From Malacoraja senta (lineage: Eukaryota): a stretch of 64,000 bases of DNA. The stretch's first letter is position 1. Each line of letters starts with the position of its first letter. Below the pieces are notes generated by a model. The model saw nothing but the letters and a program-made list of their open reading frames with translations, was not told the DNA's origin and made no database searches. The translations under genes and the position numbers were made by a program. The stretch spans positions 35,030,001 to 35,094,000 of the forward strand of contig CM075977.1 in assembly GCA_038087875.1 (NCBI GenBank), written 5' to 3'. Shown here one piece after another: positions 1,693-12,409 of this stretch.

Positions 1693-2240
1693 TTATAAGG
1701 ATGCATTGAACACCCTGCGGTGCCCAGCGGTCCCGGAATCCCTCCAGGGCGCTCGTGGACAATGCGTAGTCCCTCTCTCACACCACCCGGGTATGGACAT
1801 AACCCCGGAAAAGGGGAAGGCAGCTAGCTCGGTCAGAGTCCTCTTTCGCCTGGTGCCGTGACTCACGGATGGCCAGCTTGGCCAGGCCCAGGAGCAACCC
1901 AACCAGGACATCTTCGGTCCTACCCTCTCCCCTACGCACAGGGTGTCCGAAGATGAGGATGGTGGGTGAGAAGTGCAGCCAGTAGGCAAGGAGCAGCCCT
2001 TTTAGATAATGGAACAGGGGCTGCAATCTCACACACTCCATATTCACGTGGTACACAGACTCTTCCAGCCCACAAAAGTGGCAGGCGGCACTCAAACAGC
2101 ATGGAGGGCTCTGCTGTTCTCTCGGTCACACCTCCTCTACACCAGCAGGTCTCGACCTTTTGGATGGAAAACCCACCCCTTTGTTCACGCGGCAAATATA
2201 CTTGTCCTTGCCCATAAATCTCCATTGACATCATGGGTCG
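1693..2240 (-). mobile_element. Tx1/L1-clade LINE, 3' ORF2 fragment (C-terminal zinc-binding region), decayed
   Basis: Minus-strand frames give CHFCGLEESVYHVNMECVRLQPLF...LLLGLAKLAI and FRDRWAPQG, typical of the Tx1 ORF2 C-terminus. Confidence 0.8.
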
Positions 2241-2524
2241 CTCATTTTAAGAGCAATTGATGTGCCAAATTTATTTTTTGTTTATTTTATTATGAACTTT
2301 CTACCTAAATTATCCCAATTTTATTAAAGGCTTGCAAACCCCTGGTGCTCTGTGGCGCAATTTGCCCCAGTGGTCCATGCACCATAGGTTGTGGGGCATA
2401 GTTGTAGTCTCATTGTTAGTACTTTACTTCTTCCATCACCACCCTCCTTAACCTGTACTAAGACATTGTTTCTTACTCTCTCCTGCCATCCTCCTGTCAA
2501 ATAACCTCCTCTCACAATCTTAGA

Positions 2525-2730: not shown

Positions 2731-2819
2731 GAAGCTTGGGTTAAAAGGTTCAAAGGTATTTTATTGTCACGTGTACCAATTAAGGTACAGTGAAACTCGA
2801 TTTACCATACAGTCATACT

Positions 2820-3267
2820 TGTAATGGCCATTTGGCTTGTTTTGCGTGTCATTAATGATGGCATGTGTCTTTATGACGTATTCTTGGGCGTGTTTGGGGC
2901 TCTGTATCTTGCGCAGAAGCTTAGTTTTTAGTTTAGTTTGGAACGAGCCTGGAGAAGGTTTACTCTTCGACCATGCGAAGTGTAGCGGAGACACGAGGAG
3001 TTTTCTAATGTTTAAAGCAATAAGCTGGAGTTCGATGAAGATTATAGTAACGAGTCTGAAGAAGTTTGGATGTACCTTATTGTTTTCATCAACAATAAAG
3101 AATTTATTAATCAAAATACTGTGTTTTTGAAGACTTATCTGTGAAGAAGCTCTGAAGATCTCTGATGGTGAGCTCGCATGCGTATGGAGACATTCCTCTT
3201 AACCATGCTGTCCATTTAGCGGCTAGAGAGAGTAATCTCTTGAACGATATAAAAATCTGCTGCTACA
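2820..3267 (+). repeat. 5' LTR of the BEL/Pao element
   Basis: Direct repeat of 7199-7546 plus 8596-8722; begins TGT, ends ACA; AATAAA at ~3094. Confidence 0.92.
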
Positions 3268-3789
3268 TTAAGTCGAAGGAAACCTCCGGCAAAGGGGTAA
3301 ATACCAGTCTCAGAGATTGGGACAGAAGATTTGGCTAAGATCTCGGAGAGGTTTTGGCCAGAAGACCAATTCCAGCCGAGGAACTGAAGAAAATAGATCT
3401 CGGCCATAGAAGGCCTTGAGGTCTATCAACAGCATCGAGTCTGAAGACACATCACAGAAATTGTGAGTAAAAATCGATTATTATTCTTGGAATTTGAAGC
3501 TACAAGGTTTAGAAGAGCCAGAAGGTGTTTTTTCCCGTCTGTCTGGAGAAACGAGACTGACCTTGGATTGTTTGAATCTTTTGATAAACACGCATTCCTT
3601 TCGAATTATCATCATCTTTTAGCCCATGGATGTTGGAGAGATGTTCTCTAAAATATCAGTTTGTTATGGTTCTGAGTACATTTTTTTTAAATAGCCGCTC
3701 GATGTTTACATAAGGCTGGAGCAGAATTCAGAGAAGACTCTGTTCGTAAAATTTAAAGACTTGGCGATTTGCCAAGACCTCTTTAAAAT

Positions 3790-5528
3790 TATGGATCCAG
3801 AAGATGAAGAAAGAGCCGCACCTGAGGGACCACGAGGTGGTAATGAAAGACCAATTAGACAACTTAAACTCATGTATCGAGAAGAAACAGATAATTCACA
3901 AGCTGCCTGTTTGAAAGAAACCTAGAAGGAGAGAAACAAACTATGGAAACAGGTTACCAGATTAATTGAGAAACAGGTGAAATCTAATATGTACCAACTA
4001 TTGAACCTCTGCCAGGAGGTTGGCAAGAAACAAGATGTACTGCTGTGTTCACAGCCGTCTCGGGAAGAACGCAGAAGACATACCCAATGGGAAGAAGACA
4101 GGTATGAAGATATTCAATGGTTTCATGGGTAAGGCAGAGGAGTGGTTATCTGAAATTATACCACAACTTACGAGCTTAGTAGCTGGAAGTGCGAAGCAAC
4201 AAGGTGCCAGAATGGAAGATGAAAGTTCAAGCAGTGAAGAGTCTGAAAGTTCAGATGATGAGTCTCCTGCGAAAACCAAAGCACAACAAGGTTCGTACAG
4301 TGCGGTACCCCCTCCCAAAGTTCAGAATGGAAAAGCAGGCATGATCAAGAAGAAACCAGCACAGGAGTGAGTAAAATAGAAATCAGTGACTTGTCAGACG
4401 ACAGCTCAGACAGTAGTGATGAAGAGGCACCCCTAAAACCTGGCACAACAATTGCACAGAACAAAAGCTGGCCCCATGCTGGCCAAGGCGGCTGTTGCCG
4501 CTCAGAAGCCTGCGGCCAAGAAGGCCAGTACCAGCTTGGACAGCGAGTCCGATTCTGAAAGTACTGAAGAATCTTCAAGCGACGAAGAGCCTCAGTTGAA
4601 GACCCCCAGAGCCCAACTATGAATGGTAAAAGCCACGCTTTCATCACTGCCTGCAAAGTCTGCGGCCAAAAAAACCAACAGCAGCAGCAGCGGCAGCGGT
4701 AGCAGCCTAGATAGTTCAGGATATAAATCTGGTTCTTCAACCAGTTCGGTATCAAGGGCTTCTGCTCGATTGGGAGTTGAAGCTGATCTAGCTGATCTCT
4801 CAATAGAAGCGGATGCCATGAAGATGAAACATGAAATTGAGTGGAAGAAAGAAGAGATAGGAAGACAAAAAGAAGAGATAAGAAGACAAAAAGAAGAGAT
4901 GAGACAACGAGAAGAACAGATGAAAGAAGAGATGAGACAAGAAGAAGAAGAGCTGAGGCGACGAAAGGAACAACTGGAACTAGACACAAAGATGGCGGTG
5001 GCCAAGACAATGAAGGAGCTACCGGAAAGTGAGTGGTCAAGATGCAGTTCTAGAACATCGAAGGTGATGAACTCCGATTTGGGAAGAAAGATTGCTCGAA
5101 GTGATTTAGCAGTTGGATCCATTCCACAATCGAGGTCCACCGGATTTCATGGCTTTGAAAACCCATTGGAACAGAGGAAGATGGGTGAAACGTCATCTCA
5201 GCAAATGGGTGCTAGATCGAAACCAACTACTATTGGAGCGTCTGTGGATACTCGAGACAAACCAATAGCGGATCATGCTTGTCCGAGACCTGGTGCACAG
5301 ACTCAAGCAAGCCAATTTGAATCACAAAGGCTTGTTTATCAACAGGTGGTGCCAAGCCAAGGTTATCAGGATGAGTTATTGGCACTGTTGAATAGGCAAA
5401 CTGTATTCAACCAGATCATAGCTCAACAAAATACCTCTCTCATTCTACCACCAGCAGAAATTCCTACGTATGGTGGAGACCCTTTGCAGTATGAAGTTTT
5501 CACAAGGGCATCTTACCAGTACAGCTAA
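3790..5528 (+). pseudogene. gag: BEL/Pao gag region (frameshifted), including ORF 4623-5528, with an inserted NOLC1-like segment
   Basis: Ser-rich SSVSRASAR..EADLA..KHEIE coiled-coil, 21-bp EEIRRQK repeats, LPPAEIPTYGGDPLQYEVF (BEL gag/DUF1759-like); C-terminal zinc knuckles absent. Start coordinate approximate. Confidence 0.75.
4213..4720 (+). pseudogene. NOLC1: Captured intronless fragment of a Nopp140/NOLC1-like coding sequence
   Basis: Alternating acidic-Ser and K/A/P-rich tracts (EDESSSSEESESSDDESPAK..., DDSSDSSDEEAP..., KPAAKKAS..DSESDSESTEESSSDEEP) and the motif GSYSAVPPP, matching my recollection of PGPYSSVPPP in human NOLC1. Confidence 0.72.
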
Positions 5529-6815
5529 GGAACAGCAAGACGAAATCAGTGTTACAAACATGCTTTTCTGGATCACGGAAGTTCGACTACCTTTTGCACA
5601 GAAAACCTGACGAGAAGACTGAACATCACAGGAGAAGAGACTAAGATTCGATTACATACCATGACTAAAGATAAAGAGAGCAGGAGTCATTACATTACGA
5701 GTATGGAGATATCCAGTCTGGATGAAGATAATTTTATACCAATATCTGAATTGTTTACATATGGAACCATGCCTGTTGGTCGTCTGAAATAAATTCTAGT
5801 GTTGATCTACTTATCGGAACGAATGTTTTGAAGGCATTGGAACCTATACAGATTGTTAGGAGCCATGGACCGTATGCTATGAAAACCCAAATTGGATGGG
5901 TTATCTATGGCTCCTTGAAAAGGAACCATGAAAACGAGAATCAGAGGAACTATCCTACCATTGCTGTTAATCAAAGATCTACTGATAAATTAGAAAAGCC
6001 GGTGATGAAGCCATACCATTATGACTTCAAGGAAAGTACCAGCAAGGAATCTGAAGAGATGTCGAATGAAGAGTTGAAGTTCATGGATATTATGAACTAC
6101 TCAGTGAAAACTGACGGTCACTATTGTGTGGACTTACCTTTCAAACAAGAAAGTGTTAATCTGCCGAATAATCGTCGTATGGCAGAGCAACGTACCCAGA
6201 ATTTGTAACGCAAGTTTGACGAGAATACTACATTTCATGAAATAAGAATCTCTTTGAAGAATAATTTCTACATGGATGATTGCTTAAAATCCATGTCTAC
6301 TGAGCAGGAAGCAATTCTACCAGTAGAACATCTGACTTCTCTTTGCAATAAGGGAGGATTCACACTCTCCAAGTGGAACAGCGACAATTGTGAAAGCATT
6401 CCACTAGATGATAAAGCCAAAGAAACCAGAGAGTTGGATTTGAACTGAGACAATCTGCCAATGGAAAGAGCATTGGCAGTTACTAATGTTGTACAACTGA
6501 AATATGTTAACACAGAAGAAAATTCTGCAGATGAAGTTTCCAGAGAACTGACAGTGAACCGTTTCTTAAGCGAAAAGAGATGGATCAATGAACTAAAATC
6601 TCTGTGTAAGCCAGACAGAGAATGGCCAAAGCTCGAGCTGGGATTTGAAATCTCTGCTAATGATCCGGAAACTAAATCAAATCTAACGGTGAACTTTATT
6701 GCTAAAGATCCTGTTATTCTTTTGAAGGATTTTCACACTTCAACATAACTGTTACAACACATCCATGAGTTGCTCGGACATGGAGGAAGACGTTTCATGC
6801 TATCAAAGCTTTGGG
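5520..6815 (+). pseudogene. pol: BEL/Pao pol remnants (protease, partial RT/RNase H, integrase N-terminus), heavily deleted
   Basis: AFLDHGS, GPYAMKTQIGWVIYG, HYCVDLPFK, FYMDD, KYVNTEENSADEVSR and HELLGHGG, all within ~1.3 kb. Confidence 0.85.
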
Positions 6816-7009
6816 CTGTTATGTTTTGGACTATATACTGGGTATCATTCCTGATTTTAAGGGTTTGGTGCGCACAGCACGACTTTGAACTAAAACCAGC
6901 GTTTTAATAAGATTAATAATCAAGTTATGCTTGCTTCTAGAAGGCGAAAGTGAAGATGGAAGAGTCGATGAAGAATTCTGATTGCGAATATATAGTGCAT
7001 GCTATTTTT

Positions 7010-7084
7010 TCCTCGATAATATAGTGGTTAGTATCCCCGCTTGTCATGCGGTAGACCGGGGTTCAATTTCCCGACGAGGAGCCA
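7010..7084 (+). tRNA. tRNA-Asp(GTC)-derived sequence with encoded 3' CCA (probably a pseudogene in this copy), inside the BEL element
   Basis: 72-nt TCCTCGATAATATAGTGGTTAGTATCCCCGCTTGTCATGCGGTAGACCGGGGTTCAATTTCCCGACGAGGAG followed by CCA; cloverleaf with GTC anticodon; about 7-9 substitutions from the canonical vertebrate tRNA-Asp; T6 run at 7103-7108. Confidence 0.88.
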
Positions 7085-7198
7085 CGGGGTTCAATTCCCT
7101 GATTTTTTGCTTTTTGATATATGTTAAGCCTTCATGGCCACTTTTTTGATGTTTATTAATAATTGCCTCGTTATATGGTCGGATCAATTAGAGCCCGG

Positions 7199-8722
7199 TA
7201 TGGTGGCCATTTGGCTTGTTTTGCGTGTCATTAATGATGGCATGTGTCTTTAAATTTTAGACTGCCCGTTATATTGTGGGTGGGATTTATGACGTATTCT
7301 TGGGCGTGTTTGGGGCTATGTATCTTGCGCAGAAGCTTAATTTTTAGTTTAGTTTGGAACGAGCATGGAGAAGGTTTACCCTTCGACCATGCGAAGTGTA
7401 ACGGGGACACGTTTTATAATGTTTAAAGCAATAAGCTGTTCAATGAAGATTATAGTAACGTCGGAAGAAGTTTGGATGTACCTTATTGTTTTCATCAACA
7501 ATAAAACAATTATTAATCAAAAGACTGTGTTTTTGAAGACTTATCTTAGGTATGTTACAAAACTTACCTTCAGCGGCGCTGCAGTTCTGTCACTGCCCGT
7601 GTGCGCGACTTTGGCGCCTTTGAGAGGGGGGCGGGTTTAAAATGCGATATTTCGGCAGCCTGTTCTAAACGATCTTGAACAGGCTAAATAGTTGATGAAG
7701 AAAAATCGCTTCGACTGCCGTTTTATTAAGTTTATTAAAATTAGCGCTTTATAATTAAATTGTTGGAGTAAAATTAAAATCATCTTCAAATGCCATGAAC
7801 GCCGACAACGGGACGGATTTCACGCACGGGACAAGGCAAGGTACACCGTTTATTTTTTCATATAAACTTGCTTCTTAGGATGCCTTTAATAAAAATTTCA
7901 AGTTGCGAAAATGTGATTATTTAAATATACCAACCGGCAGTATTTTTGCTGCCGATATTGGGGTTTAATTCAGTGCAACCGCAGCGTTCCAAACCGGCGC
8001 GTTCCACAAAATCCCACTCGCAAGATGATTTAAATGGCCATTAATTTACAGGAATTAAACACTAAATTCCTTCCATTTGGCCTATAAATTAATGACAATG
8101 AGATTTAAAAATAATGTTATATTGTGAATTCTTGTGTGAATGTTATCTGGACACTTAGGCTTTTTAAAAATGTTAACTTTTTCTTAAGAAATGGATAGAT
8201 ATTGAGATCTAGTAATTGAATTTTGTAATTAGCTACAGTTGGGTAACTAACTAATTATATGCTTTAATTTCAGGTCATCCAAGTAAGGTTGTTTCATATT
8301 TGTTTCAGAATGCTTCAATCTATAATAACTGAAAATTTCATTAAGTTCTCTTAATTTTTAAGAAAGTTATGGGCTTTTGACTGTCCTTGATCACAGCTTT
8401 TGTGTTGTCAATGGAAAAGCAATAGGGAACAAGATGCTAATTTCCGAGTATGAAAATGGCCATAGCTTTTTTAATACTGAAGATATGAAAGTGAATTAAG
8501 TGTCAAATTAAACTTATTTTTATGCTTTATCTGATGGGATAAATTGCAGACTTGATTTTTTAAATCTCAAAATTTTGTAACATTGCTACTTATCTGTGAA
8601 GAAGCTCTAAAGGTCTCTGATGGTGAGCTTGCATGCATACGGAGACATTCCCCTTAACCATGCTGTCCATTTAGCGGCTAGGGAGAGTAATCTCTTGAAC
8701 GATATAAAAATCTGCCCCTACA
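7199..8722 (+). repeat. 3' LTR of the BEL/Pao element, interrupted at 7547-8588
   Basis: Homologous to 2820-3267 on both sides of the insertion; ends ...CCCCTACA followed by the TSD. Confidence 0.9.
7547..8588. mobile_element. Non-autonomous TIR DNA transposon (hAT- or P-like), ~1.04 kb
   Basis: TIRs TAGGTATGTTACAAAA / TTTTGTAACATTGCTA; CTTATCT duplicated at 7540-7546 and 8589-8595; the 5' LTR shows the empty site. Confidence 0.88.
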
Positions 8723-9994
8723 ATACTATAAAAAGCAACAAGACACACAACTACATAAAAGTTATCATAAATCCACCACAGCGGATTCGCCACATTTCTC
8801 ACTTTGATGGAAGGCAATAAAGTCTAATCTTCTTCATTTTTCATTCTCCCGCGGTCGGGGCAGTCGAACCATCCGCAGTCAGGGCAATCAAAGCTCCCAC
8901 ATCCGGCGATTGAAGCCCCCACGTTGGGGCGATCGAAGCTCCCATGATTGTGGCGGTCGAAGCTCCTGTGGCCTGGAGCTCCCGAAGTCGGTCCATAACC
9001 CTAAGCTCCACGACATTGAAGTTCGCAGGATCTCGCAGTTGTAGCTCCAAGGTCGATCCTCGACAGGGACCACCAGCTCCATGATGTTAAGTCCTGCAGG
9101 CTCCCGCGGTGGAGCTCCAGCAAAGGCTGCCAACTCCTCGATGTTACGCCGCAGTGCGGTCAGAGATACTATACGGAATAAAATCACTTCTCCGTCAAGG
9201 TAAGAGACTAAACAAAGTTTCCCCCGACCACCACCCTCCCCCCCCACACACACACACATAAAACAAAGCTAAAGAACACTAGAACATACATTTAACATAC
9301 TAAAAAACAACAAAGAAGGAAAAGGACGAGACAGACTGTTGGCGAGGCAGCCATTGCGGCACCACCCGGGTCAATCCTCTTTGTGACAACATAGGGCTCT
9401 GCTATGTGTTTCAGTTCCCCTGCACCCAAAGACGCATGGGTCAGGAGTCTGAGTACAGAATGACCTAGAGGCCATTTAACATCCTCATCCTGCTAAAATC
9501 TGTCTTACTTTTTGTAGGTCGGGGTCAGTTACAGAGGGGAAAAAAGACACTATCAGAAATAAATTAAAATCTAGCTATTTTTCCAAGTGTAACCTTGAAC
9601 GATGCTTTGTATGTTGCATCTAAAGAAATAGGCATGTGTTTGGAGTCATGCAGAATTTTGTTAGCCTTGTTCCTTCGCTTTGCTGACAATGAGGGGGTGC
9701 TTGTTGTCTTGACACCATGTTACTCAGCTCACTATCTCCTTCCTATACTGTTAATACTGGCCAAATTAAAGACACCATAAAATGGAGGATCCCTGCACTT
9801 GTCAGAATTGCTTAACCCTTATCAGCTGAAATTTACAGGCTTTGGATGGCGCGGGCCAGTCCAGGCTCAGACTGGTATGCAGGATGGTGAGGGGTCCAGG
9901 TGTTCTCCTGGTTTCTCCTAAATTGATAACATGTATAGCAGTTTTGCAAACAAACCCAAGATGCATCATTTTGATTGGATCGCTGCAAGGGCAT

Positions 9995-10534: not shown

Positions 10535-10769
10535 ATACTTTGTCTCGTCATTATTTGAGGCCGCCTTTTGCAAACCTGTAAATGGAGTTGGAACGGAATT
10601 CCAAATGCCTTTAGAAACCTACATTATTTATGTAGGTATAATGGTCAGGTCGAGGAAAGTTCCCACCGCCATGGGTGCCATGTAATCCCATGCTACCTGC
10701 TCCATGGTCAGATAGTCGGCGACTAAACCGTCTCCCCCACCTGGTTTGCCAGGTGACGACAATAAAAAA

Positions 10770-11390
10770 TACACAATAGACAATAGGAGCAGGAGTAGGC
10801 CCTTTGGTCCTTCGAGCCCGCACCGCCATTCAATGTGATCATGGCTGATCATCCACAATCAGTACCCCGTTCCTGCCTTCTCGCCATATCCCCTACTCCG
10901 CTATCTTTAAGAGCCCTATCAAGCTCTCTCTTGAAAGATTCCAGAGAACGGCTTCCACCACCCTCTGAGGCAGAGAATTTCACAGACACAAACTCTCTGT
11001 GTGAAAAAGTGTTTCCTCTTCTCCATTCTAAATGCCTTACCCCTTATTCTTAAACTGTGGCCCTGGTTCTGGACTCCCCCAACATCGGGAACATGTTTCC
11101 TGCCTCCATCGTGTTCAAACCTTTAGTAATCTAATATGTTTCAATAAGATACCCTCTCATCCTTCTAAATTCCAGAGTATACAAGCCCAGCCTCTCCATT
11201 CTCTCAGCATATGACAGTCCCGCCATCCCGGGAATTAACCTTGTAAACCTACGCTGCACTCCCTCAATAGCAAGAATGTCCTTCCTAAAATTTGGAGACC
11301 AAAACTGCACACATTACTCCAGGTGTGGTCTCACTAGGGCCCTGTACAACTGCAGAAGGACTTCTTTGCTCCTATACTTAACTCCTCTTG
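10770..11390 (-). mobile_element. CR1 (HER1-like) LINE 3' fragment
   Basis: Minus strand encodes LYRALVRPHLE.CVQFWSP; CR1 3' UTR with (ctattgt)n tail. Confidence 0.92.
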
Positions 11391-12409
11391 GAGGGGGCTT
11401 GATCAGCAGGACCAAAAACAAGACCTGTCAAATGGCGGATGAGCTTCTAGCGAGCCAACAGCCATCCACACTTCAGTAGAAGTTGCGATCACTGTTGTAC
11501 ATAGCATTGTAAGGAATGATGATAAAGCACACACACCAAAATCCTATACTTCCAGCGGCGGAAGTCCGCAGGAACTGGAGGACAGAGATGTGTGGTGCAT
11601 CCGTTACTGTTCCCGTTGGAAACCAGTACCACTGCGTCGCTAATGTTTCAATGATTATGAAATTATTTATCTATATCATAAAGATACTGTATATTCAATC
11701 TGGAATGTAATTATCCTACTAAAGTAACTCCTTTCACAAGTGAAAGTATATTTAATTTTTTGTTGATGACTCTTTTTTATTTTGACTATATTATTTAGCA
11801 AGCAAATCTCGTGCTCACTTAAACTAAATCTTTCTCAACCAATGGTACTCTGAACCAAAGCCACAAGATTGCAGAGAATGGAGCCAAGGGGCCACAAGGC
11901 CACGAAGCTGTACTGTAATATTTCTGTGATTTCATGTTTCCTGAGAGTTAAAATTCGTCCAGTTTCATAAGATGCCATCAAAGTAAAATTCAAATCCCAA
12001 ACATTTGGTAGAGGTGCAACCAACGTAAATAATTATGAATCATTGGAATCTTTCCGTGGACGGTATTCTATTGACCACTTCATGTTTATATTATCCAGAA
12101 GTGCACTTACAACAAGAGGCCTGGATGAAAGAGTTTCAACGAACAGTACAATTCTTTCATCCTACTAAAGGCATCTCAAAATTATGATATTTGTGTCAGG
12201 ATGGGGGATTGTCCCGATGTAAGCATTGTCTTTCTGCTGACAGGAGAGCATGCAACAAAAGCTTTTCACTGTACCTCGGTACACATGACAATAAACTAAA
12301 CTGAACTGAACTGATGAAACACTGATGCTTTGTTAAGATGCTATCTACCTGCAAATAATTACAATACTCATAGCTTGAAACAATAGGTATTGTATTTTAT
12401 CAGTCTAGC

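Follow-up and report, generated by a model that had tools for sequence, protein, structure and literature searches.

A 64,000-nt stretch of the Malacoraja senta genome (GCA_038087875.1, contig CM075977.1, positions 35,030,001 to 35,094,000 of the forward strand; hereafter, the window) contains a long terminal repeat (LTR) retrotransposon at 2820-8722 that belongs to a shrunken, non-autonomous family derived from BEL/Pao elements. Its gag region is interrupted by a 496-bp block (4224-4719) that is foreign to gag and derives from a host transcript, very probably that of NOLC1 (Nopp140). As a whole, the evidence makes it probable that a piece of NOLC1 mRNA entered a skate BEL/Pao element by template switching, spread with it, and is carried as a passenger.

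The window was compared with L001, a related copy from Amblyraja radiata (CM021370.1) that was found via protein P0002, with the Logan-derived open reading frames (ORFs) P0001 and P0003, and with contigs of eight public runs (names beginning with X denote runs). The features of gag and of the insert are as follows.

3761..4223, + strand: N-terminal gag region, broken by a TAG at 3923-3925 and a frameshift near 4100; aligns with L001 9450-9838 and the start of the L001 ORF 9281-9904, and matches P0001 and P0003.
4224..4719, + strand: host-derived insert, very probably from NOLC1, with 3.5 acidic-Ser/basic repeats in place of 42 nt of the canonical gag linker; missing from P0001, P0003, L001 and contigs of the empty form.
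4224..4339, + strand: mRNA block 1, which contains GSYSAVPPP; X17 record 10, 823-938; X15 record 10, 794-909; X19 record 14, 805-923.
4335..4570, + strand: mRNA block 2, before which the host mRNA has 174 nt extra (225 nt in X19), with both frameshift sites inside; from the contig alignment.
4560..4719, + strand: mRNA block 3, before which the host mRNA has 405 nt extra (387 nt in X19), holding the TGA at 4620-4622; from the contig alignment.
4715..4719, + strand: TTCAG, common to the host mRNA and the canonical element, a 5-nt microhomology at the 3' junction; from loose ends of contigs against the window sequence.
4720..5510, + strand: gag Ser-rich linker and coiled-coil region; aligns with L001 9881-10741 and matches P0002 and P0003.

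Three-frame translation of 3700-7000 showed that, in the frame of ORF 4020-4370, gag-like sequence extends as far as ...GARMEDE (MEDE = 4212-4223). From 4224, the unchanged gag frame reads an acidic-serine cluster and then a Lys/Ala/Pro tract with GSYSAVPPP; the repeat pattern lies in another frame from ~4367 to 4460 and then returns to the first. ORF 4623-5528 covers the last repeat and, after it, the Ser-rich and coiled-coil part of gag. Within 4224-4719, four acidic and three basic tracts are readable (S 23%, A 13%, K 12%). The strict gag frame meets stops at 4368, 4377, 4434 and 4620, the first three of them within the frameshifted stretch. The original prediction, made from the sequence of the window, had described such an alternating tract between two parts of gag, and the translation confirmed it; the foreign block that it placed at 4213-4720 is real, with actual limits of 4224-4719. 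The two frameshifts (~4365 and ~4460) and the single stop that it reported were refined by comparison with the mRNA contigs described below: one C present in the mRNA is missing after 4359, one base is extra at 4460/4461 (the mRNA has one fewer at 4461), and where the window copy has TGA at 4620-4622, the mRNA and most other copies have CGA.

The tract is an insertion. In both P0001 and P0003, ...MEDE is followed by ITSRESISKVST... and then by the Ser-rich block, and in L001 the positions corresponding to 4223 and 4716 are separated by 42 nt. Contigs that join 4224 to 4716 via ~41 other letters were found in all eight runs, and those over 4236-4704 were much fewer and shallower than those over the flanks. 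Because depth measures copy number poorly, our claim is limited to a clear majority of the insert-free form. In total, 42 nt were exchanged for 492 nt, both multiples of three, and the frame is kept at both junctions, in line with the predicted entry and exit in the gag frame. It had also been considered that relatives might carry the tract as native gag, and neither L001 nor P0001 and P0003 do.

The insert matches one contig each in X17 (2780 nt), X15 (2464 nt) and X19 (2193 nt). Each match consists of three collinear blocks (window 4224-4339, 4335-4570 and 4560-4691/4697, i.e., 116, 236 and 132 nt), with 53-55 mismatches in ~484 nt, and an identity of ~89% over 484 nt to an independent transcript contig places the tract beyond chance. 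On the mRNA contigs, the counterpart of the insert lies at about 820-1870, and the lengths of extra mRNA between the blocks (174 and 405 nt, or 225 and 387 nt in X19) are all multiples of three. Beyond the match the contigs hold repeat-like coding sequence that differs from the element, encoding AKAAAATAKE before 4224 and SSDSSESEEE after the matched part. In X17, X15 and X19 the donor contig is ~10x deeper than the element flanks and in the DNA runs the relation is reversed, which argues that it represents an abundant mRNA. The insert thus derives from a host transcript, as had been predicted, with a ~89% match to 2.2-2.8 kb contigs in three transcriptome-like runs. Several points count against this interpretation. 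The kinds of run are guesses ('RNA?') and X19 was flagged 'probably DNA', copy number is poorly reflected by contig depths, the ends of the donor contigs are known for 30 letters, and their NOLC1 identity rests on the window's own translation.

To compare that translation with human NOLC1 (Q14978), we used the protein text and exact mass spectrometry peptides in the supplement of PMC11427299 and Smith-Waterman alignment with 5000 composition-preserving shuffles as a control, which replaced composition-adjusted BLASTP. Piece 1 (block 1) matched NOLC1 263-302 (score 76, z 7.0) and piece 2 (4370-4468) matched 348-385 (score 60, z 5.3), each reached by none of the 5000 shuffles, and piece 3 (block 3) matched 441-478 (score 51, z 4.6; two of 5000 shuffles). 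The order of the three matches is identical in the window and in the human protein. In addition, of the four sequences that the supplement prints, NOLC1 alone has the anchors G-x-YS-x-VPPP and LS-LPAK. The central domain of Nopp140 consists of 10 acidic/basic repeats that are phosphorylated by CK2 and bind small nucleolar ribonucleoproteins (snoRNPs) when phosphorylated (PMC6938241). The insert resembles this host protein in its alternating acidic-serine and Lys/Ala/Pro tracts and in its collinearity with human ~263-478, but differs from it in holding 3.5 of the ~10 repeats, in lacking two mRNA segments, and in being frameshifted and stopped in the window copy. Neither LisH (N-terminal) nor SRP40_C (C-terminal) was found by Pfam in any piece; because it is an internal fragment, the insert is NOLC1-derived and not a NOLC1 gene.

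At the 5' junction, ...GATGAA of the element directly meets AGTTCA... of the mRNA with no real microhomology (0 nt). At the 3' junction, the shared TTCAG stands in the context ...GATAGTTCAG in the mRNA and ...GGATTCAG in the canonical element, and at the internal skips the blocks overlap by 5 and 2-11 shared letters. Template switching is classical for retroviral transduction. In the skate element, two non-homologous switches most likely took place during minus-strand synthesis on co-packaged RNAs, the first from the element RNA to the NOLC1 mRNA at the common TTCAG and the second from the NOLC1 mRNA back to the RNA of the element, at a gag position 42 nt farther upstream. As a result, 14 codons of the Ser-rich gag linker would have been replaced by 164 host codons with the frame kept at both ends. 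The internal skips could represent further repeat-to-repeat jumps or, equally, an alternatively spliced donor. The chimeric RNA would then have been retrotransposed via helper proteins, giving rise to a minority subfamily now present in several related species, of which the window copy would be one old integrated member that has since decayed.

Capture at the RNA level by template switching is likely, and abnormal switching between RNAs has been described for LTR retrotransposons (PMC13317346). The case for it is built on collinearity with the mRNA contigs, and this leaves room for a DNA-level event, in which a fragment of NOLC1 genomic DNA or cDNA entered one integrated copy by double-strand-break repair or gene conversion and that copy later served as a transcribed master. 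A 42-nt replacement with 0 nt and 5 nt of microhomology at its junctions would also suit end joining, but the insert follows the transcript contigs along all three blocks, and two in-frame mRNA segments are gone, as repeat-guided jumps of a reverse transcriptase or an alternative isoform predict. Moreover, the carrier is a retroelement, whose own replication supplies the switching step (PMC13317346). We consider such a DNA-level origin unlikely.

The chimera occurs under several organism codes. The 5' junction is bridged by contigs in X10 (records 1 and 2) and X7 (records 20 and 21), and the 3' junction by contigs in X3 (record 19), X6 (record 23), X10 (record 8) and X7 (records 26 and 27); these four runs carry four different organism codes. 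A search with junction words, with four sampled words only, gave shares of 0.75 in six further organism codes and is suggestive only. The bridging contigs, together with the LTRs of the window copy and the ATACT duplication around it, indicate that the chimera is a mobile, multi-copy minority subfamily, and the same-junction contigs in several runs speak for a trait of this subfamily rather than the one-off insertion that the original prediction had also considered. Contigs in X6 and X10 (two organism codes) read to 4339, then through 17 other letters, and back to 4181. They represent a rearranged or partly duplicated insert-bearing form; mRNA block 1 likewise ends at 4339.

About half of the differences between the window copy and the mRNA, including the TGA at 4620, are private to this copy, and the remainder separate the subfamily from the mRNA. 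The loss of the C after 4359 is common to most of the insert-bearing DNA contigs, while the C survives in a minority of them; not all copies have the extra base at 4460/4461. Since the mRNA has the C, the un-shifted state is ancestral, and because a minority of the DNA contigs also keep it, the ancestral chimera probably had an open frame across the insert. The spread appears to have taken place largely without one, which fits the view of a passenger in a helper-dependent element. The cargo is most probably such a passenger without a function of its own, given the frameshift at 4359 in most insert-bearing contigs, the deletion of the gag core in the window copy, and the shrunken pol that is also found in L001. 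A point that speaks against a pure passenger is that both junctions are in frame, for which the chance is ~1 in 9, and this would allow for an early phase in which an open gag was important.

Alternatively, the Gag-NOLC1 fusion could once have worked and been selected. The CK2-type repeats would have altered the localization or condensation of Gag (nucleoli, Cajal bodies), with the borrowed CK2-phosphorylated module of a condensate scaffold shifting the gathering of Gag or RNA or the competition for helper particles, and would thereby have aided the spread among skate species before the subfamily decayed. In addition to the in-frame junctions, the ancestral un-shifted state that a minority of DNA contigs keep and the arrival of the subfamily in several organism codes would agree with this. 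So would the snoRNP binding of phosphorylated Nopp140 repeats (PMC6938241) and the frequency of nuclear Gag among retroelements, with nuclear and nucleolar Gag known in both retroviruses and retrotransposons (PMC6042332). Against it, the 4359 frameshift carried by most insert-bearing contigs leads to stops in the gag frame, and the insert subfamily is a minority beside the insert-free form. Neither X15 nor X17, which are RNA-like, showed a chimeric transcript (X19 record 15 may be an exception), the family is non-autonomous, and the gag core is missing in the window copy. A functional chimera is thus quite unlikely, and the routing of particles to nucleolar condensates is not supported by anything here.

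As for the donor gene, an origin from treacle (TCOF1) or another protein with acidic-Ser/basic repeats has to be weighed against NOLC1. A human treacle repeat peptide scored 44 (z 2.5) against piece 1 and 49 (z 4.1) against piece 2, the latter being a match that counts against NOLC1, and no full-length source protein was returned by the protein searches. However, the NOLC1 segments outscored the treacle peptide on both pieces (76 vs 44 and 60 vs 49), and Pfam Treacle had no match at E ≤ 1 in the pieces. Because treacle also scores, the choice of NOLC1 rests mainly on the anchors G-x-YS-x-VPPP and LS-LPAK and on the collinearity of the three matches.

Several searches likewise retrieved no relative of NOLC1, and the blank searches of large protein libraries and BLASTP count against the assignment. 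Composition-adjusted BLASTP against short human NOLC1 segments returned nothing (E 0.74 and E 0.017), and phmmer with the 52-residue first piece had 0 matches among 1.84 billion representative proteins. Because the query was short and of low complexity, the blank phmmer result is no evidence against homology. Word-indexed searches with the 116-aa and 301-aa ORFs returned only an insert-free gag fragment and insert-free gag relatives, respectively, and residues 1-40 of the 301-aa ORF returned nothing at E ≤ 10, in a search whose length range leaves out full-length NOLC1. The ESM Atlas gave no usable match for the pieces, PDB sequences gave nothing or histone H2B tails alone at E ~0.2, and Pfam gave sub-threshold low-complexity matches only on all pieces. 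The motif YSSVPPP was in no main text of the literature searched. Taken together, we regard treacle or a similar protein as a very unlikely source, and NOLC1, the source named in the original prediction, is graded most likely on the basis of a collinear match that goes beyond composition and is better than that of the treacle repeat.

That the tract is native to gag, a convergent product, a nested processed pseudogene made by a LINE, or an assembly artefact is extremely improbable, even though gag has a Ser-rich linker of its own beside the insert: canonical copies are without the tract, its nucleotide identity to the transcript is 89%, junction-bridging contigs occur in independent runs, and there is no poly(A), mRNA 3' end or target duplication around 4224-4719. 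Like a LINE-made processed pseudogene, the insert is derived from a host mRNA, is collinear with it and shows no intron; unlike one, it is an internal coding fragment that replaces sequence of the element, and because poly(A), mRNA 3' end and duplication are all lacking, it was not made by a LINE.

In acutely transforming retroviruses, transduction yields Gag-host fusion proteins. The skate element resembles them in having an mRNA-collinear fragment with no intron seen, fused in frame to gag, in a replication-defective carrier that needs a helper, with little or no homology at the junctions. In contrast to these viruses, the carrier is an endogenous BEL/Pao retrotransposon of the germline and not infectious, both junctions lie inside gag with 0.5 kb taken, and the cargo is a disordered repeat segment without a known growth effect that persists as a multi-copy genomic subfamily.

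LTR retroelements are known to capture genes (PMC13317346, PMC3726574, PMC4299795). The captures reported in plants (maize Bs1, and surveys of rice and sorghum; PMC13317346, PMC3726574) are similar in that a non-autonomous element has fragments of host coding sequence attached to its own ORF and is amplified together with them. Those elements are Ty1/copia or Ty3/gypsy, whereas here the carrier is a BEL/Pao element of a cartilaginous fish, with one small stretch of its gag replaced in frame. The template-switch chimeras Veju and BARE-2 (PMC13317346) share the proposed mechanism, switching between unrelated RNAs in one particle; their partner is another element or unknown sequence, whereas in the skate it would be a cellular mRNA, and the switch is inferred. 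In our literature search, no described case joined BEL/Pao with gene capture, or Nopp140 with a retrotransposon gag in such a sense. The original prediction had stated that no case was described, and this holds for BEL/Pao in these searches, whereas the capture of genes by LTR retroelements in general is well known.

The capture of host coding sequence is a textbook feature of acutely transforming retroviruses and is well documented in plants, but has rarely been documented for the non-retroviral LTR retrotransposons of animals. In the skate element the junctions are readable to the base because both the donor transcript and the insert-free element are recoverable. It would thus provide a clean natural record of template switching in a vertebrate germline, in which 42 nt gave way to 492 nt with 5 nt of microhomology and two in-frame internal skips. 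The cargo is also unusual, being, on the NOLC1 assignment, a disordered, multiply phosphorylated repeat module of a nucleolar and Cajal-body scaffold placed in a gag linker.

The remaining features of the element are as follows.

2815..2819, + strand: 5' target-site duplication ATACT; repeated directly after the 3' LTR, at 8723-8727.
2820..3268, + strand: 5' LTR with TG...CA ends; direct repeat with 7198-8722.
5510..5511, + strand: deletion breakpoint, at which the gag core (DUF1759) and zinc knuckles are gone from the window copy; from comparison with L001.
5783..6750, + strand: pol remnants (protease-like, YMDD-region and RNase H-like pieces), read from translations; equally shrunken in the A. 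radiata copy.
7010..7084, + strand: tRNA-Asp(GTC) with CCA, a second foreign passenger; from ARAGORN, Rfam (42.1 bits) and the sequence.
7198..8722, + strand: 3' LTR, broken by a 1042-bp hAT-like miniature inverted-repeat transposable element (MITE) at 7547-8588; direct repeat with the 5' LTR.
8723..8727, + strand: 3' target-site duplication ATACT; copy of 2815-2819.

The two LTRs (2820-3268 and 7198-8722) are 94.7% identical in aligned non-gap columns, and the window copy has the TG...CA LTR ends and short target duplication (5 bp, ATACT) that are a trait of BEL/Pao elements. Relative to the breakpoint at 5510, L001 has ~1030 nt extra (10741-11772). This stretch, which the window copy lacks, encodes zinc knuckles and, at L001 10818-11138, DUF1759 (PF03564), detected by Pfam with 27.7 bits at a cut-off of 25.4; P0004 fell just short of it. 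The family was placed in BEL/Pao because of DUF1759 and the overall layout. Window 5783-7549 aligns with L001 12097-13830 at 86% identity in one uninterrupted piece, so the reduced pol is a family trait and not private decay. The short pol remnants had no Pfam match to the A17 protease, reverse transcriptase, RNase H or integrase, and the protease-like and YMDD-region motifs were read by eye. The identical, internally deleted pol layout in the window copy and in L001 is that of an amplified, shrunken, non-autonomous BEL/Pao derivative.

NCBI labels the 209-aa gag coiled-coil product within L001 10001-14104 (CM021370.1) as 'GRB10-interacting GYF protein 2-like', which looks like a misnaming from low-complexity similarity. 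Just upstream of the 3' LTR, at 7010-7110, the tRNA-Asp(GTC) is followed by a partial duplicate of its T-arm and a T-run, and ARAGORN found no tRNA in the counterpart part of the A. radiata copy (L001 12500-14100). The MITE in the 3' LTR has 19-nt terminal inverted repeats (7547-7565 and 8570-8588) and is flanked by an 8-bp target duplication, ACTTATCT, at 7539-7546 and 8589-8596. Around the element, the ORFs at 1693-2260 (- strand) and 11131-11310 (- strand) resemble the C-terminal parts of LINE reverse transcriptases and represent ordinary interspersed repeats.

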